A stretch of DNA of 64,000 nucleotides from Thalia democratica (Eukaryota): the NCBI GenBank assembly GCA_965202585.1, contig OZ241831.1, forward strand, positions 19,530,001 through 19,594,000, read 5' to 3'. Positions 25,603 to 40,685 of this stretch are shown here, one piece after another; position 1 is the first letter of the stretch, and the number at the start of each line of letters is the position of its first letter. The translations under genes and the position numbers were made by a program. Below the pieces are notes generated by a model. It was not told where the DNA came from and made no database searches. It saw only the letters and a list, made by a program, of their open reading frames with translations.

Positions 25603-28600
25603 TTTTTGAAAATATTATTTTTAGCTAATATATATTTCAAAACTTTAGAAACTTTTCACAAACTACTTCACTGCAATTATATTTTTGAATGTAAGTTCAA
25701 GATATATATGATAAAACAATTAACTATATATCTATTTTGCTACTATTACAAAAAAATGAATTCATAAAACAAACATGAGATACAAACTTATTTATTTTTA
25801 AGATAATTTGTTTACAACTACTTTAAAACGGTTTTAAATGTTTTTTTGTGGTTGTTTAATCCTAACAATTTATTTATTGTAAATTTTTTTATTAAACATG
25901 CTCAACTTGAATTTTTTAACTATGTTTCTAAATTATTTGATAAAAACCTCTACTTAAGACGTTTTATAAGTTTTTTTGTATTTGTTTGAACCAAAAAGTT
26001 TGTACTTTGTAAGATTATCTTTTTATAACTTCTAACCAAACCATTTTAAATTGTTTATTGTCATATGAAATTCTATTACCTACACAAACCGTTACAAAGT
26101 TTAACTGCCGAACGGATTATGAAACTATCTGAATTGTTACATATGTTGTCAATAAGGATTGTAGATAAAAAAATTTATGAAATGTTATTTTCTTTATTAA
26201 ACACCGCAATTGATTTTTTTTTTAAACTTTGTTTAAAATATATTTTAAGACGCTTTAGTTGTGTTTTAGTTTCTGTGAAACATTTTATTTTTTGTAAGTT
26301 TATATACTATACCTGTTTAAACTGCATTTTTATTATTTTATGTAACTTTTGTGCTAAAAACCTCTACATAAGAGATTTTATAAGCGTTTTTATAAAAACT
26401 ATCAACTTACCATTAAAACTGTCTGTCTAATTTATGTACAACAACAACATTTTAGAGTTTTGGATGCTATAACTTTGTTTTCGTGTCTATTAAACCTTAA
26501 AAGTACATTTATTCTCATAATCTCTTTCTTAATTGCCTATAAAGCCATACCTCGACAAATTACTAATGTTAATTATATACAAAAGGGTTCTAATAAGGAC
26601 GGTTAAACAGTTTTTCGTGTTTATTTTAACTGAAAGACAAGTAATTGAAAATATTTAATTGAAAATTTTATAATTATTATTTATAACTACTAAAACTGAG
26701 TTTTAGTTATTACATTTAAACAGTTTTTTTTTGTTTTTTTTTTAATATAAATTTTATTTATGTCATTTTTTAATTAAAACTGATCAAATTCCAACCTTTT
26801 ATTCTATATATTTGTTGTATTACGATTCAACAGCTTCTTTTCAGTTTTAAGAGAAAAAGTATATTCGTTTACCAGTTTTAATCAAATTTATATATAAGAG
26901 TCTAAATTCTTTTCTATACACAATTTATTATTATACTACAAGTAAGTAAATACTACTTTTTATTAGTTTATATTTAAAATAGGTACAATTAATATATTAA
27001 TTTGTGTTAAAAATTATCATTTTGTGTGAGTAGAATTATTTTTAAATATAATATTATAATTTATGGTTTTATCGAAATATATTTCAAAGTCGTGTAATTT
27101 TATTCTACAATAAATGTACAAAAATTAAAAAAACTTCTTGTTTAAAACTTTTAACTACTGTTATAAGTTTTATTTAATAACATTCATATATCTTAATATT
27201 TTATTTATATATAAATCAATTTTTAAATAGATAACATTGATTTTTACATGTAATTTTGAAATAAAATAATATTTACTTCGATATTTTAACCTAAATAGAT
27301 TCATGCAAACTATATATTTTATTCACGACCGGTTTCAGTGGCAAAAAATTGCGACCTTTTCAAGCAAAAATAAAATATTAAACTTTTTTAATTAACTTTT
27401 TTAGTTAAGGCAAATAACTAGATATTTTAACCTAAAAAAGTTTAATGATTTACAACATATCTAATTTGTTTAAATAATGAAAGTTAGATAAAGTATAGTG
27501 TAAGAATCCACTTAAAAAAACTTAAAAATATGCCGGTTTAAAATTTATATTTAAATTTAAATTATCCAACTCGCATTGGTTTCATCGTTATAAACTATTT
27601 ACGAGTTAGCTTTTTTTAAACGTTGAACATTCTATTGAAAAAATCTATCTTTTGTGTTCAGTAGAGCGGAGGATTTGGTGGCTAAACGCGAAGCCACCCG
27701 TAAAAAATTGGTTATACGCACGAATCGGGGCACACATTATTAAACATTATTTGCAAATACTTTTACCAATTTTATACGACATTAAATATATGTTTACTAC
27801 CAGGTCCAAAATTCTTCAATGTGCTTTTTAAAAAGTAAAGACATCGGTAACGTACGCACTTTGAGAAGAACGCACCCGCGTAAGGTACGCACCTGCGTAG
27901 GGTACGCACTAAATATTTAGAAAATAATAATATTTGTTTTAGAAAATTTATTTAAACTTATATATTTATAAACTTTTTACAGGTGTTATTAGAGACGAAG
28001 ACAAGCTCTTTAAAGCGAAAATAGAAAACTGTAACTACTAGTGACATTTCAACTACGATTGACATTTTAACTATATTAAAACTTTATCGTCATATAAATA
28101 AAAAATATTAACGTGTTTCAGACAAGTTATTCAAAATTGTTTTAAAAGCAATTGTTGAGGCGAGTTTTAAAAAGTATTAGCTGTACTTAGTTTTTGATTT
28201 AGAGTAGTTTTATGACTTTCAATAATATTAAATACTATTGGCATGTTTTTAAAAGATTATTTTGGTCATTTTAATTACATTTAAGACTAAATTCTAAAAT
28301 ATAAAAATTAGAATTAATAAAAGCAAAAAAAAACTTTTGCATCAAATAAAGTAAAATTTTTTTAATAATATCAATTTGTTTTTATTGTTATGTTCTCCGA
28401 TATCACTAGTTTAGACTACTTTCCACCAAAGCTGACGAAGTTTTAGTTCTAATTTTTAGGTTAAATAGTTTTAAATTTTGTTTTTTTTTTTTTGAAATGT
28501 GTGTCTGATAAGTACGTTAATGTTATATTTAACGCTCTCATTAAATTTTTTTAATACTTTAACTAAGGCTAGCATCGTTATTGTTATGCGTGCAACAATT

Positions 28601-29041
28601 TATAGTTTGTATAGAACAAGCTTACCAAACTTTTATTGTTGAATAGAAAAAAAAGTAAATGTTTTGCAGGTACTCATTAAAAAACTAAAAATGTGTTAAA
28701 AGTTTTATTGTTTTATACAGCACATACCAGAGATACAAGTGTCGAAAATTAAATATACAATTATCAAAAAATCCCCGACAGTAAGAGTTTTTAATCTTAA
28801 ATATAAATAAAAATTTACAAAAAGTTATAATAGTTAGTTTTTAATCTTAGGATAGGTTTTCTCCTTCTGAAGATATCAAAATTAATTTAAGCTAAAATAT
28901 ATTTAGTTTATTATTTAAATACTTGATTTATTTTGTAGCCGCAAATTAATACTATATAGTTATTCTTTAGAACAATTCAGCCTATAATATACAACTCTCA
29001 TTTGTGGAAAAAGCATGCACAAAACAAACCTTATATTAATA

Positions 29042-29254
29042 TGTAACGCCTCTGGCTATAAATTAAATTCAGCAAAAGAGTTTTCTCTAATTAGGGTTTT
29101 TTTAATTTGTTTACTTTCTAAATTGCCGCCTTATAAATAAACTATGAGATGTTGTGGCAGCTCAAGCTTGACTTTTCTATGTGCTAAATTGTGAGTATTG
29201 TTATTAATCTCTTATTTTTAGTTCTGTCTCTTAAATTGATATATTTCTAATAAA
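29042..29254 (+). repeat. 5' part of the Gypsy 5' LTR
   Basis: Starts TGTAAC; 213 bp with 3 substitutions versus 37511-37723. Confidence 0.85.
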
Positions 29255-30015
29255 ATATGTTTTGGTTTTAAGAAAACAAATAGAGAGATCTCAACTGCTG
29301 GAGGAGAAGTAATATATTTATTCTTTCAAAAATTTATTTTACAAACTAAGTTTCGGTCAAAGACCTCTTCAGTGCTTAAATAAATCTAAAAAAAGATATG
29401 TGACAGTCATGGAAAATAGCAATTGAACAATTAAATAAAGATAAAAACAAAATATTACTGAAAATTTTTACTTAAGAAACTAAACAAATCAAATTTTAAT
29501 ATTAAGACTGAGTTTTAGTAGAAGTTTAAATTTTTAGCTAAGTTTTAAAATCAATATAACAACAATACTAACAATAATCAAAGCTGTATGTAGCTTTCTT
29601 TTTTCTTCTAAATAATTTACAGACTAAACATTGCTTAAGTAAAAGTGTGATTAATGAAATGAGCTTAAAATTTAATTGAAATTGGTGTGGCTTATTTTAA
29701 TTGTGACGTAATTATTGAAAATTTGAACAATTTTGTGCTTTTAATCGTTATTAAAATTTAAATTTCCGCTCAAATGCTTTATATGAAAGCTTACAGTTAA
29801 AACAAATTTTTACCTTAGAACAAAACAAGTTAAATTATGGTACTAAGTTTGAATTTTTGGCAAAGTTTAAATTCTAGTTAAATTTAAGAATCAAAGAACA
29901 ACACAAATAAATAAGAATAAGGTTAATAATAATAAGTAGGCTTAAGTTAAGATGCATTTTAATCAAGCTGAATTTTATTGTGACTTGAATATTGTGAATT
30001 TAAGTAGTTTTGTGC
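29255..30015 (-). mobile_element. Inverted 3' UTR/pLTR of Neptune family B
   Basis: Carries a hammerhead on the - strand. Its minus-strand start TAAGCACAAAACTACTTAAA (29999-30018) is identical to 33437-33456, the end of the family-B 3' UTR on +. Confidence 0.7.
29332..29385 (-). ncRNA. Minimal type I hammerhead ribozyme
   Basis: Minus strand: ATTTATTT AA GCA CTGAAGA GGTC TTT GACC GAAAC TTA GTT TGT A AAATAAAT. Canonical core, 4-bp stem II, GUU cleavage site. Confidence 0.85.
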
Positions 30016-30108
30016 TTAAGAGTTTCTTGTAGTTGCTTGGGCTTGTTTGGTATAGGTTTCTTGTTTTATCTGCGAAAAGGATGATTTTATTTTTAGTTAG
30101 TATCTGTT

Positions 30109-31830
30109 TTAACTAACAACATAACTAAAACTTACAAAACTTCAAACGAAAACCTAATCGAACAAATAAATACCGAGTCACAAGAATTAATCACCGACAG
30201 AAAATACAAAAACAAAAAAATACCTAAGTTCTCAACCTCGGACGCCTTTATAACAGTAAAGGATCACAAGAAACAATTCCCCCTCAATGTTGAGTGCAGA
30301 CTATTAAACCCAGACAAAAACGAGCTTGGGAGGATAAGCAAAAACATCTTAGAAAGAGCTGTGACGAAAATAAGATACGCGTCAAGATTGGTCCAGTGGA
30401 AAAACTCATTTGAAGTAATCGAATGGTTCAATAATGTACAAAATAAATCAAAAAAATGCTTTATAAACTTCGATATTGTGAATTTCTATCCCAGTATCAC
30501 TGAAAATCATTTAACTAACGCTATAAACTTTGCAAAAAAATACACCATAATAGAAGACAGGGACATAAAATTAATTAAGCACACCTGCAAAACAATTTTG
30601 ACTTTTAACAAAAAAACCTGGATCAAAAAAGATAACAACAACCTATTCGACGTTCCCATGGGCTCCTTCTTCGGCGCCGAGTTATGCGATTTAATCGGAC
30701 TATATGCATTGAGCAAGCTTGAACCTCTTTATGATACTAAAGAGATCGGTTTGTATAGAGACGACGGCCTTGCAATTATCCAACCAAAAAACAACCAAGA
30801 TTTAGAAAATAAAAAGAAAAAAACAATAAAAATATTCAGAGATATTGGTTTTAAAATAACGATAGACACTGGTGCAACTATATGCAACTTTTTAGATATA
30901 ACATTAGACCTTTCAAATAACTTATTTAAACCGTACAAAAAAGAAAACACAGAAACTAGATACATTAATAGAAACTCTAACCATCCTAAAATTATTAAAA
31001 AGAACTTACCGGCAATGATAGAAAATAGACTGATTAAATTATCTAAAAACAAATATATTTTTGATCAAAATGCATACACATACCAAAACGCTTTAGACAA
31101 ATCAAATTTTAAACATAAACTGACTTATAAGGAAGATTTTAACAAACAGAAAAAGAAAAGAAACAGAACAAGAAAAATAATTTATTTCAACCCACCATTT
31201 TGCGAATCAGTAAAAACAAACATAGGAAAAATATTTTTTGAATTAATCAACAAACATTTTAATCAGAACAACAGTCTAAACAAGTTAATAAATAAAAGCA
31301 ACTGTAAGTTAGCGTATAGTTGCATGAGTAACATAAAAATGCTAATCCAAGGACACAACAAAAAAACTTTAAATAATGCAGAAAAAACTGAAAATACCGA
31401 CAAAGTAGAATCACTATGTAATTGTAGAAACAAAAACTTATGCCCGCTAAAAAACAAATGCCTAACTAATAATGTTATCTATAAAGCTACGGTCACGACG
31501 AAAAAAGAATTAAAACAATACGTAGGAAGCACAGGAGGAACTTTCAAGAAAAGGTGGTATAGCCACATAAGAGATATAAAAATTTACAAGGAGAACGGAA
31601 CCGAACTATCCAAATATATTTGGAAACTAAAACGCAACAACACTAACTACAACATCAAATGGGAAATTTTACACCACATCGGACACATAAGGAAACCGCA
31701 GAGAATCTGCAGGACCTGCTCCTATGAAAAAATGGAAATAGCGAACGCTGACGGGGAAACATCATTAAATAAAAGGAACGAGTTAATATGTTCTTGTATA
31801 CACTTTAAGAAGCTTTATTTCAAAACTTAA
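30109..31830 (+). CDS. Neptune-clade PLE polyprotein (RT + Cys-rich linker + GIY-YIG endonuclease); open for 573 codons, 5'-incomplete
   Basis: I translated 30109-30360 and found no stop upstream of the track start. Motifs: FDIVNFYPSI, VPMGSFFGAELCDL, LYRDDGL, YFNPPF, CNCRNKNLCPLKNKC, VIYKA...YVGST, KKRWYSH, CRTC, LNKRNEL..C.H. Confidence 0.93.
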   Translation, partial: LTNNITKTYKTSNENLIEQINTESQELITDRKYKNKKIPKFSTSDAFITVKDHKKQFPLNVECRLLNPDKNELGRISKNILERAVTKIRYASRLVQWKNSFEVIEWFNNVQNKSKKCFINFDIVNFYPSITENHLTNAINFAKKYTIIEDRDIKLIKHTCKTILTFNKKTWIKKDNNNLFDVPMGSFFGAELCDLIGLYALSKLEPLYDTKEIGLYRDDGLAIIQPKNNQDLENKKKKTIKIFRDIGFKITIDTGATICNFLDITLDLSNNLFKPYKKENTETRYINRNSNHPKIIKKNLPAMIENRLIKLSKNKYIFDQNAYTYQNALDKSNFKHKLTYKEDFNKQKKKRNRTRKIIYFNPPFCESVKTNIGKIFFELINKHFNQNNSLNKLINKSNCKLAYSCMSNIKMLIQGHNKKTLNNAEKTENTDKVESLCNCRNKNLCPLKNKCLTNNVIYKATVTTKKELKQYVGSTGGTFKKRWYSHIRDIKIYKENGTELSKYIWKLKRNNTNYNIKWEILHHIGHIRKPQRICRTCSYEKMEIANADGETSLNKRNELICSCIHFKKLYFKT

Positions 31831-32267
31831 GAGCGTTTTGATAAAAAAATATCTATTTTAATTTGTACAAGTACTTAAACCAATATATAATTACGTCATA
31901 ATACAATAGCCAAACTTTTTTTTTTTTTTTTTAAACGAGTAAACTTAACTTAAAGGTTTAGTTAAAGAGATGTTTTTCTTTGTTAGTTATCTAAAGATTT
32001 CACAAGGCCACTAAATGTTAGTAGAATTATTTTTTATTGTATATTTTTTTGTTTGTTTAAGTTTTAAGATTGTATAATTATTAAGTAACGTGCATTTTCC
32101 TAAATTTAGCCTAGCAACATTAAAATCATCATACGCTAATAACTTTAAACTATAGGTTTTAATTAGATTTCACTCAGTTTTTTGTTATACATTTTTTCTT
32201 TTTAACTTCTTTTATTTCAAGTTTAGCCTAATGTCTTCCTACTTGTTATCACATAAATTTTTACAGA

Positions 32268-32329
32268 TTTTAAACAACTGAAGATCTCGTTTTTTTTTTA
32301 AACGAGTGAAACATTGTATTGTAATAAAA
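32268..32329 (+). ncRNA. Type I hammerhead ribozyme in the Neptune 3' UTR (sense to the ORF)
   Basis: TTTTAAA CAA CTGAAGA T CTCGTTT-(T)n-AAACGAG T GAAAC ATT GTA TTG TAATAAAA; same family as 18510. Confidence 0.82.
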
Positions 32330-32348
32330 TTTTAGAAATTTATCATTG

Positions 32349-32601
32349 AAAACCAAATTACAGATAATTTCAATATAATTAAGTATTAACACCAAAGTTT
32401 ATTTATTCAAATTTATGTAAAACCAAAGTACAAATAACTCCAATTTAATTTTATTAACAGCAAAGTTTATTTATTCAAATTTATGCAAAACCAAAGTAAA
32501 ATTAACTTCAATTTAATTTTATTAACAGCAAAGTTTATTTATTCAAATTTATGCAAAACCAAAGTAAAATTAACTTCAATTTAACTTTATTAGAAATATA
32601 T
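32349..32601 (-). repeat. Inverted 253-bp internal piece of the Gypsy LTR
   Basis: Reverse complement of 37708-37960, including the 68-bp tandem units. Confidence 0.9.
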
Positions 32602-32617
32602 ATTTATTCTTTCAAAA

Positions 32618-32671
32618 ATTTATTTTACAAACTAAGTTTCGGTCAAAGACCTCTTCAGTGCTTAAATAAAT
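32618..32671 (-). ncRNA. Second copy of the family-B hammerhead
   Basis: Lies within 32598-32862, a 265-bp direct duplicate of 29312-29576. Confidence 0.85.
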
Positions 32672-32862
32672 CTAAAAAAAGATATGTGACAGTCATGGAA
32701 AATAGCAATTGAACAATTAAATAAAGATAAAAACAAAATATTACTGAAAATTTTTACTTAAGAAACTAAACAAATCAAATTTTAATATTAAGACTGAGTT
32801 TTAGTAGAAGTTTAAATTTTTAGCTAAGTTTTAAAATCAATATAACAACAATACTAACAATA

Positions 32863-33313
32863 CTTAAAAACAAGAAACGATGATCCAAACGAAACACTTT
32901 GCAACTGCCGAACAAAAAACAAATGTCCCCTTAAGAATAAATGCTTAGTTGAAAATGTGATATATAAAGCGACAATCAAATCGGAAAACGAAACAAAAAA
33001 CTATTTAGGCTCAACGGGTGGAACTTTTAAAAAAAGATGGTACAACCATATTAATGACTTTAAAAACTATAAAGAGAACGGAACAGAATTATCGAAGTAT
33101 ATATGGAAGCTTAAAAATAAGAACATCGAATACAAAATAGATTGGGAAATTATCCACCACATTGGCAAAGCAAAAAACCCACAAAGCATTTGCAGTACTT
33201 GCATATTAGAAAAGGTCGCGATCGCTAAAGCAGACAGAAGGGATAATCTAAACAAACGGTACGAACTCTTTTATTCCTGCCCGCACTTCCGAAAACTCCA
33301 CTTCAAAACTTAA
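32863..33313 (+). pseudogene. 5'-truncated Neptune family B fragment (Cys linker + GIY-YIG endonuclease)
   Basis: LCNCRTKNKCPLKNKCLVENVIYKAT...YLGSTGGTFKKRWYNH...CSTC...LNKRYEL..CPHFRKLHFKT; clearly related to but distinct from the 30109 ORF. Confidence 0.9.
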
Positions 33314-33473
33314 ATTAATCGTAACACAGGTTTTATGCATGCTTTTTAATTTTTGTAACTATAATTTTCTTAAAGTTAATTTTTTTTTTTTTTTCTAAAT
33401 TATTCAAGCAAAATTTTAAAATTTTGGTAACTATTATAAGCACAAAACTACTTAAAGCTCTTGGTATAGCACA

Positions 33474-35957
33474 ATGAGTAACAGATCCAAGCCCACCAAA
33501 AAGGATAGTATGTTCTCTTTAGGTACGAGATATTTCACAAACTTGGATTTGAAAGAGGCATACTACAGCCTGCCTCTCGCAGCCAACTCCCAAAAATGTG
33601 CTGCAATTATCGATCATAGTGGTGTTTTCATTCCCAATCGGTGCGTTTTTGGTTTGAAAAACGCACCGATGAAATTCCAGCAGGTAATGGAGGCCTTGCT
33701 GAGGGAATGCGAAGACTTCACTTATGTCTATCTTGACGACATATTGATATATTCTTACACGGAAGAGGAGCATATCTATCATGTGAGAAAAGTATTTGAA
33801 ACCCTGTCAAAATACGGACTCTTCTTGAATGTAAAAAAGACTACCTTTGCTAAGTCGAAATTAGAATTTCTCGGGCACGTGATCGGCGTAGAGGGGATCA
33901 ATGTACAAGCCTCAAAAGTAGCGGCCATTAAAGAGTATCCCGTACCCATTACGCGCAAAGATCTCAAGAGGTTTCTTGGGATGGCGAACTACTACCATTC
34001 CTTTATTGTTGGTTTAGCAGAGATCTTGGCACCCTTAAGCGCAATATCAGGGGGACCAAAAAAGACCAACCGAACCATCTTGAAGTTAGACGATTCTCAT
34101 ATCAAAGCGTTTGAGGACACAAAGACAGCATTAGCTAACGCAGCCACCCTGTCGTTTGAAGACCAGGGTAAACCTTTCATTTTGTTCTCTGATGCCTCGG
34201 ACACCCACACAGGTGCCTCACTAGAACAACTAAACGATAAAAATGTGATGGTACCTCTTGCTTTCTTTTCAAGAAGCATTCCGGAAAACAAACGAGCACG
34301 TTGTACATACTACAAAGAACTAACAGGTTTAGTTATGGCCATTAAGCATTTCCACAGTCGAATCTATGGGCGACAACTAATAATAAGATCTGACAATATG
34401 GCCCTTTGTAACGCATTAAAGAAGGAGTTGACAGATCAATCCCCCTACGTGCAACGTCATCTCCAAAGAATACAAGAATACAACCCGACCGTCATCCATG
34501 TTAAAGGCACAGATAATGTGGTGGCAGACGCTCTTAGCAGACCACCGCAAGCGGCAACGATGTACATGGGTAGGTACGAAACGGATCCAGACTATGAGGA
34601 AATGTGGTACTCCGACTCTGAAGACGAAGTCTCAGAAGACGAGTCCATGGAAATAGAAGAGGAGATAATCACACCAGAAAGGATCGACAGGAACTCTGTG
34701 GCTCTCTTGCAACAAAGTGAACCTGACTTCATTGAAACAGCACAAACACTGAAAAAAGTAGTTGAGTATAGCAAGCCCGAGAACATTGCTGAAATTGTAG
34801 AGGTCGGAAACAAAAGAGCAATTTTGCCTAAAAGTCTGAGATTACAGGCATTTAATGCGGCCCATCAGGTCCTACATCTAGGAGTGGAAAAATCAATTGA
34901 TGCGGTAGCCAAAGACTTCTGGTGGCCAACCCTGAGGGCAGATGTGACCCGTTGGGTCAAAACTTGTCTTCAGTGTCAGGCAGTTAAAGTAATCCGCCAT
35001 AACAGGCCAAAGATCGGGTTCTTTCCCGAAACTACCACCAGGCTCAGTTTTGTTCATATGGATCTCATAGGACCCATGAACGTAGTCTCAAATAATTGTC
35101 GTTATGTCCTTACAATTAAGGACCGCGGAACGGGATTCCTTGTGGCGACTCCTATTCCTGATAAGAGAGCCATGACAGTGAGGAACGCATTTATGCAAAG
35201 TTGGTGTAGCTACTTCGGGACACCTCAGGTGGTTGTGAGTGATAATGGAAAAGAATTTGCAAATCAGTTGTTGTCTGATGCCTTCATCCAACTGGGAGTG
35301 GACCACCGGTTTGTACCACCGTACAGCCCTCAAAGCAACGGCTTCATCGAACGCCAGCACAGAACAATCAACCAAGCTTTGCGTGCAGAAAAAACAAAGA
35401 CCAATTGGGCACTAAGGTTGCCTATGATTACGGCCACTATCAACAACACCTCCATTGAAGGCTCACCATACACTCCCTCTCAATACGCTCTAGGAATGTG
35501 TGTGAACCTATCTGGCCAGATTTTTGTTGACAAAAAGGTTGAAGATGGGAAGTTTGAGTACAATCATTCGGATACAAAGTTATTCCTCAACATTATGTCT
35601 GGTATCACTCGTAAACACCAACGACACAAAGAGAGAAAGAAATACTACGAACCCTCCCTATTCCAATGTAAAAAGGTTTGGGTGAAGCGTGCCAACAAAA
35701 AGAAATTGTCTACAGTATACCATGGGCCATACAGGGTGCTTCATGCCTCTGAACACTCAATGTTCATTCAGAAAAACGGTGGGGTAGTAAAAGTGTCAAT
35801 TAGAAATGTTAAGGCATATTACCCAAGAGAGGAATTGGAAGAGAGTAAATGTGATGAAATTCCCGAAAACAGATATAATTTAAGGGAAAGGAAAAAAGTG
35901 ATTAACTGGGATAAAGTAATTAACTGCCAGGAAGGAAGCAGTAGCGACGAAAACTAG
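33474..35957 (+). CDS. Ty3/Gypsy pol (N-truncated RT, RNase H, integrase) fused in frame to a 15-codon leader
   Basis: LDLKEAYYSLPL, PFG-like VFGLKNAP, YLDD; RNase H DAS...E...DN...ADALSR; HHCC (H..LHLG...CLQC); integrase HMDLIG, SDNGKEF, NGFIERQH; GPY. No protease and no RT N-terminus. Confidence 0.95.
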   Translation: MSNRSKPTKKDSMFSLGTRYFTNLDLKEAYYSLPLAANSQKCAAIIDHSGVFIPNRCVFGLKNAPMKFQQVMEALLRECEDFTYVYLDDILIYSYTEEEHIYHVRKVFETLSKYGLFLNVKKTTFAKSKLEFLGHVIGVEGINVQASKVAAIKEYPVPITRKDLKRFLGMANYYHSFIVGLAEILAPLSAISGGPKKTNRTILKLDDSHIKAFEDTKTALANAATLSFEDQGKPFILFSDASDTHTGASLEQLNDKNVMVPLAFFSRSIPENKRARCTYYKELTGLVMAIKHFHSRIYGRQLIIRSDNMALCNALKKELTDQSPYVQRHLQRIQEYNPTVIHVKGTDNVVADALSRPPQAATMYMGRYETDPDYEEMWYSDSEDEVSEDESMEIEEEIITPERIDRNSVALLQQSEPDFIETAQTLKKVVEYSKPENIAEIVEVGNKRAILPKSLRLQAFNAAHQVLHLGVEKSIDAVAKDFWWPTLRADVTRWVKTCLQCQAVKVIRHNRPKIGFFPETTTRLSFVHMDLIGPMNVVSNNCRYVLTIKDRGTGFLVATPIPDKRAMTVRNAFMQSWCSYFGTPQVVVSDNGKEFANQLLSDAFIQLGVDHRFVPPYSPQSNGFIERQHRTINQALRAEKTKTNWALRLPMITATINNTSIEGSPYTPSQYALGMCVNLSGQIFVDKKVEDGKFEYNHSDTKLFLNIMSGITRKHQRHKERKKYYEPSLFQCKKVWVKRANKKKLSTVYHGPYRVLHASEHSMFIQKNGGVVKVSIRNVKAYYPREELEESKCDEIPENRYNLRERKKVINWDKVINCQEGSSSDEN

Positions 35958-36789
35958 GAAATTACAAAACTGGTTGACAACTGCTACAATGGAGAACCGT
36001 TGGTTCTGATTAGTAAACTCCAAGATTTCTTCCTTTTTTGTAAAAGCATAAAAAGATATTTGGTACTTTTTAGATGAATACTACTTAGGGGCTTATTCAA
36101 ATAAGCAACAGTTGATTTTCACTGATTATTTTGTACAACACCTAGAAGCTGCTTGCATTTTTTATATTACTGTTAAATGACTTAACTTTAAGATTTTTTT
36201 AATTTTAAAATTAATGGGGTTTTTGATTTTATATTTATTTGTACAACCATTAAAAATTAGTATCTTATAGACATGTATTTTTTTTTGTAATTATCTTAGC
36301 TAAAATAGGTACTGTGTGATATTTCATATAAAAATCTAAAATTTTCTATATTGCATTGAGTTTTGATTGTCTCCTGTTTAATGAAACTATTTTTTTTTTC
36401 AAACACAAAAAAACTTTTTAAGAAAACCTGCTATCTACAGTTTGATGGTTTCTATTGTTTTAAAAACTTTATAGTTTTAAATTTAAAAAGCATGTTTCTG
36501 TTAATTTTTAAATCTAAGCTTTTCTAATATTCACTTTTTTTGTGTGTATGACAACATGTAATGGTGAACTTTGTGGACCATATTAAATGCTCATTATTCA
36601 TTCGAAAATGCACTGGGAAAGCTTGCCAAGCAAATTGTAAAAATCATGGCTCAGTAACTTACACTCATCTAGTTTCGTTGGGTAAGTCGAACTGCCACAC
36701 CCCAGAGACCACAGAATGAACCATTCTAATAAGAACAGGCTGCCACTACGAACAGCAGAATTGTAGTGACGATGTCGATTCGTCTGGAA

Positions 36790-37070
36790 ATGCATACATG
36801 GCAGCACACCTTTGGATGCCATGGGGGCAATGCCAACCCGTCTGCTGATGATGTCAAGCAGACCCTCGAATCCGTTGGCGTTGATGACGATGGTGAACAA
36901 CGCCAGGTCGCCAGCGATTAGTTCGCGGAGAAGGACGTCAGTGGAGCCAAACTTCCCGCCAGAGTTCCGGGGGAACCACTACAAGAAGAGCGGCCGCAGC
37001 TGGAGCAACCAGAGAAGAGGTGGAGAAGGCGAGTAAGAAGAGGCCGAGCCTCAACCTCCAGTGGAAGAGT
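36790..37070 (+). pseudogene. RPLP2: Processed, decayed 60S acidic ribosomal protein P2 fragment inside the LTR element
   Basis: After correcting three 1-nt deletions: M-x-YMAAHL..AMGGNANPSADDVKQTLESVGVD...V.S...EKDV...KL...VPG, then an Ala-rich and Glu/Lys-rich tail. In-frame TAG; no introns; no GFGLFD end. Confidence 0.75.
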
Positions 37071-37495
37071 AAGGAACCATCATCATGAACGGTAAACATT
37101 GACTTTTAAAAAATTTTTGACTCATGATTGTAATTAGGAATTTACTACATTTAAATACTTATAGTTTTAATTTTACTTTAAAAATAGCTAGTAGAGTGTT
37201 CAAATCCAGATTTTGAATTAGCTCATAAATGTTGTTATATGCAAGTACCTTCTAGCACATAAAGTTGATGATCATAAGTATCTCTTAAAATATTATTTCT
37301 GATTATTACATGTAAATTACAAAAAGAAAGTTATAAACTTATGTTGCATGCTTATATATCTCTAAGTTGAGTGCTCTAGTGTATAATGGTTTTCACCTTG
37401 ACTATATTTAAAAAATTTTTCAGTTTAACAAACGTTTAACACCTTATAACTAATGTTTATCTAAAAAAACCCAAGTTAAAATTCTAAAAATATTT

Positions 37496-37510
37496 AATAA
37501 GAGGGGAAAA
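37496..37510 (+). other. Polypurine tract
   Basis: AATAAGAGGGGAAAA directly abuts the TGTAAC LTR start. Confidence 0.8.
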
Positions 37511-38050
37511 TGTAACGCCTCTGGCTATAAATTAAATTCAGCAAAAGAGTTTTCTCTAATTAGGGTTTTTTAAATTTGTTTACTTTCTAAGTTGCCGCCT
37601 TATAAATAAACTATGAGATGTTGTGGCAGCTCAAGCTTGACTTTTCTATGTGCTAAATTGTGAGTATTGTTATTAATCTCTTATTTTTAGCTCTGTCTCT
37701 TAAATTGATATATTTCTAATAAAGTTAAATTGAAGTTAATTTTACTTTGGTTTTGCATAAATTTGAATAAATAAACTTTGCTGTTAATAAAATTAAATTG
37801 AAGTTAATTTTACTTTGGTTTTGCATAAATTTGAATAAATAAACTTTGCTGTTAATAAAATTAAATTGGAGTTATTTGTACTTTGGTTTTACATAAATTT
37901 GAATAAATAAACTTTGGTGTTAATACTTAATTATATTGAAATTATCTGTAATTTGGTTTTACATAAAATTGAATAAATAAGCTTTGTTGTTGATAATTGA
38001 TTAAATTAGCAAGCAGCTTTTGGTACTCTTATAAATCTCTGTAAATTACA
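37511..38050 (+). repeat. Gypsy 3' LTR (~540 bp)
   Basis: TGTAA...TTACA termini; preceded by a PPT; matches 29042-29254. The right end is inferred only from the inverted terminal motif. Confidence 0.75.
37724..37990 (+). repeat. ~68-bp tandem repeat, about 4 units, inside the LTR
   Basis: TACTTTGG recurs at 37743, 37811 and 37879, with a variant at 37949; each unit carries AATAAATAA. Confidence 0.85.
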
Positions 38051-38111
38051 AACCAACTTTAAGTAATTTAAAATAAACTAGTGGGCCACACCTAACTCTT
38101 GGTATAGCACA

Positions 38112-38321
38112 ATGAGTAACAGATCCAAGCCCACCAAAAAGGATAGTATGTTCTCTAAAAAGAACATACATCATACTTTAAACAAGGTCATCAACCCCGA
38201 AACTCGCTGTAGCCAACGTAATATAAACAGAGGGATTAACAAAAGGGGTGTTGACTCACACTCTTCGCGCCGTAGCCAACCTGGTCCATCAGACCAACCA
38301 CAAGCAACGTGCGAAAGATAA
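38112..38321 (+). other. Short leader/gag-start-like ORF after the LTR (possible start of a second, truncated tandem copy)
   Basis: 38096-38156 is identical to 33458-33518; composition resembles pol rather than host intergenic DNA; no recognisable domain. Confidence 0.45.
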
Positions 38322-40685
38322 ATATACTCTAAATAAGACATTAAAGTCTTTCTCTAAAAAAGCTGTTTCTAATTTTTATTAAATAATAAAGATATTGAAA
38401 CATTTAAGTCTAATGTACCTTGAAGAACTTCTGTATTTAACTTTATAAAAAATTTATACAAAAAAAAAGTTAATAAATAATAATGTTGAATAAAAGATTA
38501 AGTTACAAAATAAACTTATTTTATATTTAAAAGTTTTTTACTCTTTTATTTTAATTTTAAACCAAAAATAACTTAAGAAGAACTTCATTTTTGTTATCAA
38601 AAAAAAATTAAAGTAATATGTAAAAATATTATCATAAATTGTTTTAATTTTACAATCAAGGTGTTAAAATTGTTTTAGTACATTGTAAATTAAAACTTTT
38701 GTAATTTGACATTATATTAAGTTTATAATAACAAAAGTAATAAAGATTAACTTATGAAATTTTATCCAATATAAAATATGAGAAAAAAAAAGCTTTACTT
38801 TGTTTAGCTTTCTAGTTACTATAGCGATAAAACAGCTGTAATTAGTGGATTTCAAATTTTACCATGCCTGGCACATACATAGTTTGGTAACAATTTTTTA
38901 ATATGATAAAACAATTTTACCGAAGTTTTATCTCAAATAGACAAGAAATTTTATGCGTGCATAAACTTGTAAAGATAACGAAACAAGTTAATCAAAGTTT
39001 ATTGTTATAAAAAGCAAAAAATAGCATTATTTATAGTTTTTTTTTAATATACGTTTTCAATATTGTTTTTATTTATTTTAAATCAATGTTTTACTTTTGA
39101 TTTTTATATATTTAAAAAAAATGACTCTGAATTGCTCTAAAACGGTTTTCTATAGCTAAGCTTTAGGTAAAGAATCATATATAATGAAATGATTTCGAAA
39201 TTTCCAAGTTCAGTTTTTACAAATTGTGCAATATTTTAGAACTAATTTTACTTAAAATTATTTTGTTACTTTTAAAACCTTAATTGTGTAAGAACAAACT
39301 AATAAAAAATGTTTTTCATTTTACTTAATTTTCAGCAAATAAAGTATACGAAAAAAGAAACACAGTAAAACGAAAACTCTGAGTAGAATAAATAATATAG
39401 GAATATAGTGTACTTATTATACTTAAATAGTTATAAAATTAAATTAAAGTTGTTTATTAATCTACTAAAAACAAAAAGGTCTGTACCTGTAGTTTAAACT
39501 TAATTCTTTAAAAAAAAAATTATTTAAAACAGTTCTAGTACAAGTTTAATTAAACTTTGGTTTAAATAAACTTAAACTAAACCTTTTTTTAGTTTTAATT
39601 AAATACGTGTTTCATAAAAAGGAATATTTATATATTTGTCGAAAAAGTTTAGATTAAGTTAAATTGTGAATCGTAGTTGAAATGTCCCTAGTCGTTACAG
39701 TTTTCTATCTTTGCTTTAAAGAGCTTGTCTTCGTCTCTGATAACACCTGTAAAAAGTTTATAAATATCTAGGTTTAAATAAATTTTCTAACAAAAATATT
39801 ATTTATTTTAAATATTTAGTGCGTACCTTACGCGGATGCGTATCTCTCAAAGTGCGTACGTTACCGATGTCTTTACTTTTTAAAAAGCACATTGAAGAAA
39901 TTTGGACCTGGTATAGAATATATATTTAATATAGTATAAAATTGGTAAAAGTATCTGCAAATAATGTTTAATAATGTGTGCCCCGATTCGTGCGTATAAC
40001 CAAAAAAAATGTGATTGGCCAGCACCAGATATAACTTTACTTTATAAAATCATTTTTTAAAAACAAGGTGAACCCCACTTTGCCTGTATAAACTCTCAAA
40101 ATGCTCTTTATTTATCTGAACTTTCAAATTTCCTTATTTAGCAGTTGTAGTCTTTAGAAAATTCATGTAGGTTTTAATCAACATTATGACTTTTATGCCT
40201 TAAATTGAACTACTTATACCTCATGTTCATTTTTCTTCTTGATAATTAACAAAAGGATATATGTATATACTTCTGCATTATATGTTCACAAAACTTAGAA
40301 GAAGTACTATTTTTAAAGATTAGACAAGAATAGTTTGAACTCATTTATTAGTTATTTCTTTACTGAAAACAAGTATTTATAAGTTATAACAATTTGATCT
40401 TAAAACTAATAAAAAACACTTTAATTGATACAAATTGATTAGCTTGAGTTTGTGGCAACCCTGTTAAATGCAGTTATTGTTAATTAAAATTTTCATAAAA
40501 GTACTATTTTATATTATGTAATATAAACAACTTAAAAAAGATAAACCTGCATTGAAAATCAAGGACTTTTCTTAGAAATATCAAAATTTGAATACTTAAA
40601 AATATATATAAAAATTTATTTAAAATTCATAGAGACCACTGTAGTTGTCAGTTTGGCTATAGCCCAATGAACACATAAACAAAAA

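Follow-up and report, generated by a model that had tools for sequence, protein, structure and literature searches.

A dead Ty3/gypsy copy whose left end was probably disrupted in place by two Penelope-like insertions

Is a block of DNA in which parts of a Ty3/gypsy long terminal repeat (LTR) retrotransposon alternate with parts of two Penelope-like element (PLE) families a new composite mobile element, or is it an ordinary transposon that has been damaged? The question is raised by positions 29042-38320 of a 64,000-nucleotide stretch (G000:C7:19530001-19594000, the window) from an 802-Mb, AT-rich animal genome with a GC content of approximately 25%. The first-pass annotation of this DNA allowed both answers: that template jumping by PLEs broke up an LTR element where it stood, or that the block is a chimeric LTR-bounded unit that could be copied as a whole. 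We consider it about 70% probable that the locus is one dead gypsy LTR copy, the left end of which was disrupted in place by insertions of two PLE families, here called A and B. The locus is ordinary transposon damage and not a new composite mobile element; it is inert, and as a whole it does not form a transposable unit.

The outer frame of the block is simple. The 4-bp sequence AATA lies directly before 29042 and directly after 38320, and it is the single target site duplication (TSD) of the whole block. The interval 29042-38320 is therefore a single Ty3/gypsy integration. The LTR ends (TGT...GATA) match those of other copies of the family, and the 5' LTR starts with TGTAACG. The features of the block, with the open reading frame (ORF), untranslated region (UTR) and reverse transcriptase (RT) parts they contain, are as follows.

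29038..29041, no strand: left TSD, AATA; the same AATA follows the 3' LTR
29042..29254, plus strand: segment a, 5' LTR nt 1-213; 210/213 identical to 37511-37723
29255..30018, minus strand: segment b, 3'-terminal 764 nt of PLE B, antisense; 98% identical to more than 40 canonical B copies; terminus as in loci L042 and L047
29999..30018, no strand: arm of a 20-bp inverted duplication at the second staggered break, inside B; partner 33437-33456
30016..30112, minus strand: segment c, 97 nt of PLE A, antisense; 100% identical to L017 1504-1408, minus strand
30109..32349, plus strand: segment d, PLE A, sense, 5'-truncated, ending at the tail-less terminus CATTGA
32349..32601, minus strand: segment e, 5' LTR nt 450 to 198, inverted; 253/253 to the reverse complement of 37708-37960
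32598..32862, minus strand: segment f, B 3' region, antisense, from the tail-less B terminus; 265/265 to 29312-29576
32859..33456, plus strand: segment g, PLE B, sense, end of the ORF (putative GIY-YIG endonuclease; ORF 32957-33313) and first part of the 3' UTR
33457: filler G, 1 nt
33458..33518, plus strand: segment h, LTR nt 586-646 including the gag ATG; 61/61 to 38096-38156
33519-33521: filler TTA, 3 nt
33522..37510, plus strand: segment i, internal part of the gypsy element from mid-RT onward, with RNase H, integrase, a P2-like fragment and the polypurine tract
37511..38320, plus strand: segment j, intact 3' LTR, 810 bp; four 68-bp tandem repeats at 37717-37990
38321..38324, no strand: right TSD, AATA; position re-counted from the printed LTR end

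The 5' LTR thus survives solely as nt 1-213, nt 198-450 (inverted) and nt 586-646. The A copy lacks the first approximately 140 codons of its ORF. In segment d an open frame at 30097-31827 contains the RT core, followed by the CxC linker and a GIY-YIG-type motif; of the B ORF only the putative endonuclease end is present. The segments, repeats and junctions listed by the first-pass annotation are all there, within a few bases or short overlaps, but some of its labels have to be changed. What it read as an inverted family-B pLTR (pseudo-LTR) is indeed antisense B sequence, namely the 3'-terminal 764 nt with their 57-nt tail. What it called 'leader' is LTR sequence, namely nt 586-646 and the remainder of the 810-bp 3' LTR.

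Three junctions fall exactly at natural 3' termini of the PLEs. At J1 (29254/5) LTR nt 213 adjoins the natural terminus of B with its 57-nt tail (29255-29311), at J3 (32348/9) the tail-less terminus of A meets LTR nt 450, and at J4 (32601/2, with an ATAT overlap) LTR nt 198 meets the tail-less terminus of B. The further junctions are at 30018/9 (TTA overlap), 30112/3 (TTAA overlap), 32862/3 (AATA overlap), 33456/7/8 (1-nt filler) and 33518/33522 (3-nt filler TTA). The ATAT and TTAA microhomologies had been noticed in the first pass and are found at 32601/2 and 30112/3, respectively.

Two breakpoints carry TSD-like duplications, one of 16 bp and one of 20 bp. The 16 bp ATATATTTCTAATAAA (LTR nt 198-213) are present in both 5' LTR pieces, which bears out the earlier comparison with an inverted TSD. 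The last 20 nt of segment g (33437-33456) are the reverse complement of 29999-30018 (20/20) and form an inverted duplication. In canonical B, g runs straight into the reverse complement of b, and these 20 nt are common to both. Segment c is canonical A 1408-1504 turned around exactly where it stands, with a TTAA on either side: it lies directly 5' of d in canonical A but in the opposite orientation here, with TTAA at both ends and a TTA overlap with b. The single 4-bp TSD, the three junctions at PLE 3' termini and the 16-bp and 20-bp duplications uphold, in substance, the proposal of an LTR element broken up in place by PLE activity.

The junctions are also single-copy. Six junction-spanning queries (161-261 bp) were searched against the 802-Mb genome, and the best 40 candidates of each search were scored; among these, a full-length match is present at the window locus only. 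All other matches end at the junction, and the sole partial exception, a locus at C7:9.045M (L041), has a different joint. The search for other loci with the diagnostic junctions had been suggested as the way to tell a mobile chimera from a one-off nested insertion, and its outcome is the latter.

The proposed recent origin of the mosaic holds. Compared with the 3' LTR, the 5' LTR pieces show 3 differences in 527 positions (3 in 213 bp had been reported first), and segments b and f do not differ over 265 nt. The gypsy integration and both PLE insertions are therefore recent.

Families A and B are multi-copy in the genome, with 96-99% identity among copies. The canonical ORF of A encodes 719 amino acids (aa), and the canonical frame of B is open over at least 561 aa, its 5' end lying beyond the locus examined. 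The two are approximately 71% identical in DNA and 65% in protein. A large protein search returned 507 relatives, none with an informative name, and in an alignment of 32 relatives the YRDDG motif is invariant and an N-terminal DK(T) motif is present. A Cys-rich linker (CNCR-x4-CP-x4-C) followed by (V/I)YKA...Y(V/I)GST...R..H...E...N is conserved in the 32 relatives; this GIY-YIG-type motif is C-terminal in both A and B, after CxC, and its Y, G, R, H, E and N are invariant. The nearest Atlas clusters of both families carry RVT_1 and GIY-YIG (PF01541). RVT_1 (Pfam) was matched in just 1 of the 32 relatives, and a PDB sequence search with the A ORF and with the 32-sequence profile gave no match. 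An AlphaFold model of a full-length A relative has a predicted local distance difference test score (pLDDT) of 90.3, and its top Foldseek matches in PDB are the TERTs of Tetrahymena, Tribolium, yeast, Candida and human. As judged from the predicted fold, A and B carry the telomerase-related type of RT.

The canonical loci of A and B examined in the genome are head-to-head pairs with the 3' ends outward and TSDs of 10-13 bp. Both families have tailed and tail-less termini, and canonical insertions carry a tail of 57-61 nt at one end only (loci L016-L024, L038, L039, L042-L051). Canonical A insertions elsewhere always have a second, inverted A copy. In a tandem unit of family A, the downstream 5' UTR begins with the 57 nt that make up the tail. 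The window copies of A (32278-32311, plus strand) and B (29351-29372 and 32637-32658, minus strand) contain hammerhead-like CUGAAGA-stem II-GAAAC cores for which a stem I is plausible. The head-to-head pairs, one-sided tail and TSDs of 10-13 bp form the published PLE signature (PMC8557442, PMC11167929). Purified PLE protein cleaves and extends both strands in vitro from two adjacent RT start sites, and the tail corresponds to the stretch between these two sites (PMC8557442, PMC11167929).

We infer that the B insertion preceded that of A. Family B would have entered the 5' LTR at a staggered cut spanning LTR nt 198-213, and the resulting duplication would be the 16-bp inverted TSD, or 12 bp if the ATAT overlap is counted as B. 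The product would have been a head-to-head pair composed of a 1.35-kb antisense 3' part (b plus g) and a 265-nt sense 3' part (f), joined at the 4-nt AATA overlap. Both natural 3' termini would have faced outward, one tailed and the other tail-less. A family-B head-to-head insertion with nearly the same architecture is found at L041 (G000:C7:9043106-9046960); it is approximately 8-10% diverged and older. The halves there are joined about 15 nt away from the window joint, the tail is on the opposite side and the TSD is its own (AACAATATAT, 10 bp). The L041 joint is therefore an independent event, given its displaced position and separate TSD. The head-to-head joints of B may cluster at a partly self-complementary spot. 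A 25-nt complementarity, by which the 32862/3 joint would be common to both loci, was considered and rejected; alignment gave 4 nt of exact overlap within approximately 19 nt of imperfect similarity.

The insertion of family A would have been more disruptive. The top strand of the LTR, nicked after nt 450, would prime A cDNA at the tail-less start site, and a second break inside B (30018) with a stagger of 17-20 bp would supply another top-strand 3' end (...GCTTA). This end could pair with UAA of the A RNA (TTA/TTAA) and copy the 97 nt of segment c. The two cDNA 3' ends, each ending in the palindromic TTAA, would then anneal. With both primers pointing in one direction, the 1.1 kb between the breaks (segments g, f and e) would have had to flip, and the flip would convert the duplication at the B break into the 20-bp inverted one. 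Counted with the 2.3 kb of A itself, the inverted stretch would amount to 3.4 kb. The leftover ends (B 33456 and the LTR side) would have been end-joined with the 1-nt and 3-nt fillers. The deletion in this event would have removed approximately 3.4 kb in total, made up of LTR nt 451-585 together with 3,259 bp of canonical sequence, and a 61-bp LTR patch would be kept. The loss of approximately 3.26 kb would account for the rest of the LTR, the primer binding site (PBS), gag, the protease and the first half of RT.

The locus has the sequence features of a retrotransposition-coupled inversion of the twin-priming type, and a single event may lie behind all of them. The chances seem to us evenly balanced that the PLE nuclease and RT acted at two breaks 1.1 kb apart in one event, from two primed ends of the same strand, with inversion and deletion of the host DNA. 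A second gypsy copy of the same family bears on the choice of target. At C6:52.655M (L032 and L035; G000:C6:52648000-52666000) a family-A cluster (approximately C6:52655258-52659610) is located in the 3' LTR, with A at the identical LTR nt 450, but with a tailed terminus and a 13-bp TSD, GTAATTTGGTTTT. It is an independent insertion because of that terminus and TSD. The coincidence suggests that family A prefers a target nucleotide in the 68-bp LTR repeat.

The gypsy copy itself is a member of Ty3/gypsy by descent and is non-functional. A longer copy at C2:40598339-40607218 (L031) has two 880-bp LTRs (TGT...GATA), a 4-bp TSD and a PBS-like TGGTGACCC right after the 5' LTR. The 810-bp 3' LTR of the window has one 68-bp repeat fewer than this copy. 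The number of these repeats (window 37717-37990 and 32384-32592) is variable between copies, with four in the window, five in the C2 copy and fewer in the C6 copy. The gag ATG of the family is inside the LTR at approximately nt 602 (window region 38112-38321; C2 copy). The PBS seen in the longer copy is nowhere in the 64-kb window, and gag beyond the 15 codons in segment h, the protease and the first half of RT are gone, within the 3.26-kb gap. Pfam identifies in ORF 33474-35957, in order, RVT_1 (profile positions 66-205 only), RT_RNaseH_2, Integrase_H2C2 and rve. In this 827-aa ORF the first 15 gag codons run on in frame into the truncated pol; the fusion frame was created by the deletion and is probably fortuitous. 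The polypurine tract (37499-37510) adjoins the 3' LTR.

At least 14 other gypsy copies match the internal part 33522-37153 at 96-98% identity, and one gypsy subfamily lacks the 229 bp corresponding to 36381-36609. The ribosomal P2-like stretch (approximately 36733-37085) has a weak match of 31 residues (E = 2e-4) to human RPLP2, in the N-terminal domain of that protein. It was first taken for cargo of this locus, but the degenerate fragment occurs in all gypsy copies examined. Of 17 copies (L001-L014, L025, L026, L030), nearly all have their frames broken in the same way, L009 being the one that differs. The broken frames are also found in a gypsy subfamily that is approximately 15% diverged. 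The fragment is an old non-coding passenger of the gypsy family and not cargo of the window locus.

Among the other explanations, the one that survives best accepts that the nested insertions are real and places the inversion and deletions later, by two or three random double-strand breaks that were end-joined or by recombination between inverted PLEs. The fillers at J6 and J7 are typical of end joining, the inverted repeats made by PLEs could favour rearrangement, and the second inverted copy that canonical A always has elsewhere would have had to be lost here. However, one inversion breakpoint is, to the nucleotide, the 3' terminus of A at its putative preferred LTR site, and the other is where the twin-primed 97-nt A piece begins. 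Neither a second A copy nor LTR nt 438-585 has left any trace, and in its geometry the 20-bp inverted duplication corresponds to a staggered cut of the TSD type. We regard a later rearrangement as unlikely. Recombination between the B inverted repeats was rejected as a cause of the inversion, as it predicts a different order of segments.

An assembly artefact, in which three abundant repeat families were misjoined, is a good deal less probable still. The tandem and inverted structures of PLEs are a known assembly problem (PMC8557442). The region is composed of high-copy repeats, and the four best public runs over 28800-33700 are short-read unitigs that end in repeats, with no contig listed that bridges a junction. 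Misjoins happen inside shared repeats. Here J1, J3 and J4 fall on natural PLE termini, J2, J6 and J7 join unrelated sequences with overlaps of 0-4 nt and fillers, the breakpoints form reciprocal pairs with the 16-bp and 20-bp duplications, and the outer ends share a single TSD. Misassembly is unlikely because of these natural termini, the reciprocal duplications and the one outer TSD; biological signatures of this kind would not be recreated by an artefact.

Reverse transcription regenerates two equal LTRs, and since the two LTRs differ in structure the window copy is not itself a product of LTR-type copying. That the block is an LTR-bounded composite mobile unit of gypsy and Penelope parts, copied whole, is very improbable: it has LTR sequence at both ends, a clean TSD, near-identical duplicated parts and open frames for the PLE RT and endonuclease and for gypsy RNase H and integrase, but its junctions recur nowhere else among the scored candidates, its 5' LTR is split into three pieces (one inverted) against an intact 3' LTR, both PLE ORFs are truncated, and the missing PBS, unequal LTRs and missing gag and protease (with the first half of RT) make it neither product nor substrate of such copying.

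Several points weigh against the reading of one gypsy copy disrupted by two PLE insertions. The case for the assembly of the 4.5-kb stretch is one of internal logic. The inversion and deletion may instead stem from an unrelated two-break rearrangement after a canonical A insertion; their proposed coupling to that insertion is drawn from one locus. The head-to-head structure of B could have arisen by snap-back synthesis instead of both-strand priming. A diverged second copy of a junction could lie beyond the best 40 candidates per search; a copy of at least 90% identity would rank at the top, as the L041 look-alike did. Pfam makes no RT or GIY-YIG call on the A and B ORFs even at E<=10, and Rfam reports no hammerhead family at E<=1 for the hammerhead-like cores.

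The surroundings of the block are also repetitive. The gypsy copy is nested in an older copy of an element of approximately 2.7 kb with terminal inverted repeats, within a further repeat at 28735-29041. Inverted repeats of approximately 400 bp in the window (27704-28108 and 39627-40003; 88-94% identity) belong to this multi-copy element. Of the words sampled from window positions 28700-33700, more than 12 marine or seawater metagenome runs from several studies contain 28-58% each, and the repeat families of the block recur in many such marine runs. The host is therefore a marine animal, and probably a planktonic one.

The main value of this analysis is a correction: what seemed possibly a new composite retroelement with two types of RT is a one-off dead locus. 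To our knowledge, PLE integration is poorly understood, and there is only one biochemical study, which reports cleavage and extension of both strands and two RT start sites. The natural footprints at this locus and in the canonical A and B copies match that biochemistry in their one-sided tails of 57-61 nt and their head-to-head cDNAs joined at microhomologies, and further in an inversion that needs two primed ends. The locus is consistent with a natural, nucleotide-resolved example of both-strand priming by a PLE. If the A insertion did proceed as proposed, it would be a germline in vivo footprint, resolved to the nucleotide, of a both-strand mechanism with internal initiation that is otherwise seen in vitro only, and it would also demonstrate a preferred target nucleotide of family A in the 68-bp LTR repeat. 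The genome could be mined by PLE specialists for more such events.

How does this locus compare with known systems? Ordinary nested insertions share with it the young Ty3/gypsy landing pad with an intact outer TSD and the resulting dead composite locus. Such nests are mostly simple and collinear, whereas the host element in the window is also partly inverted and deleted, and the same LTR nucleotide was hit by family A in a second gypsy copy.

The closest parallel to the proposed rearrangement is found in the long interspersed nuclear element (LINE) LINE-1. Inversions by LINE-1 arise from recombination of the break ends of target-primed reverse transcription, with the TSD kept at reciprocal breakpoints, and deletions and twin-primed inserts are produced likewise (bioRxiv 10.1101/2024.12.14.628481). 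As in LINE-1 twin priming, an inverted 5' piece meets the sense body at a microhomology in the window. TSD-like duplications at reciprocal breakpoints, a local inversion of the flank with a kb-scale deletion, and fillers where leftover ends were end-joined are likewise shared. The element in the window, however, is a PLE with a putative GIY-YIG nuclease and not a LINE of the apurinic/apyrimidinic endonuclease (APE) type, and there is no poly(A). Both primers here would be top-strand ends of two separate breaks, and the event appears, from the DNA alone, to be germline-fixed in a genome of invertebrate type.

Families A and B agree best with the endonuclease-positive PLEs (Evgen'ev & Arkhipova 2005; Craig et al. 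2021, PMC8557442; Frangieh et al. 2024, PMC11167929). They share with these a TERT-like RT, 5'-truncated inverted copies beside sense copies, a tail at one end and variable TSDs of approximately 10-16 bp; a putative C-terminal GIY-YIG-type domain and a candidate hammerhead-like core in the terminal region would be further likenesses, and the structures of both are consistent with extension of both target strands. The tails of 57-61 nt differ from the 30-40 nt usually quoted. In the A event, as proposed, two breaks 1.1 kb apart are joined and the intervening host DNA is inverted.

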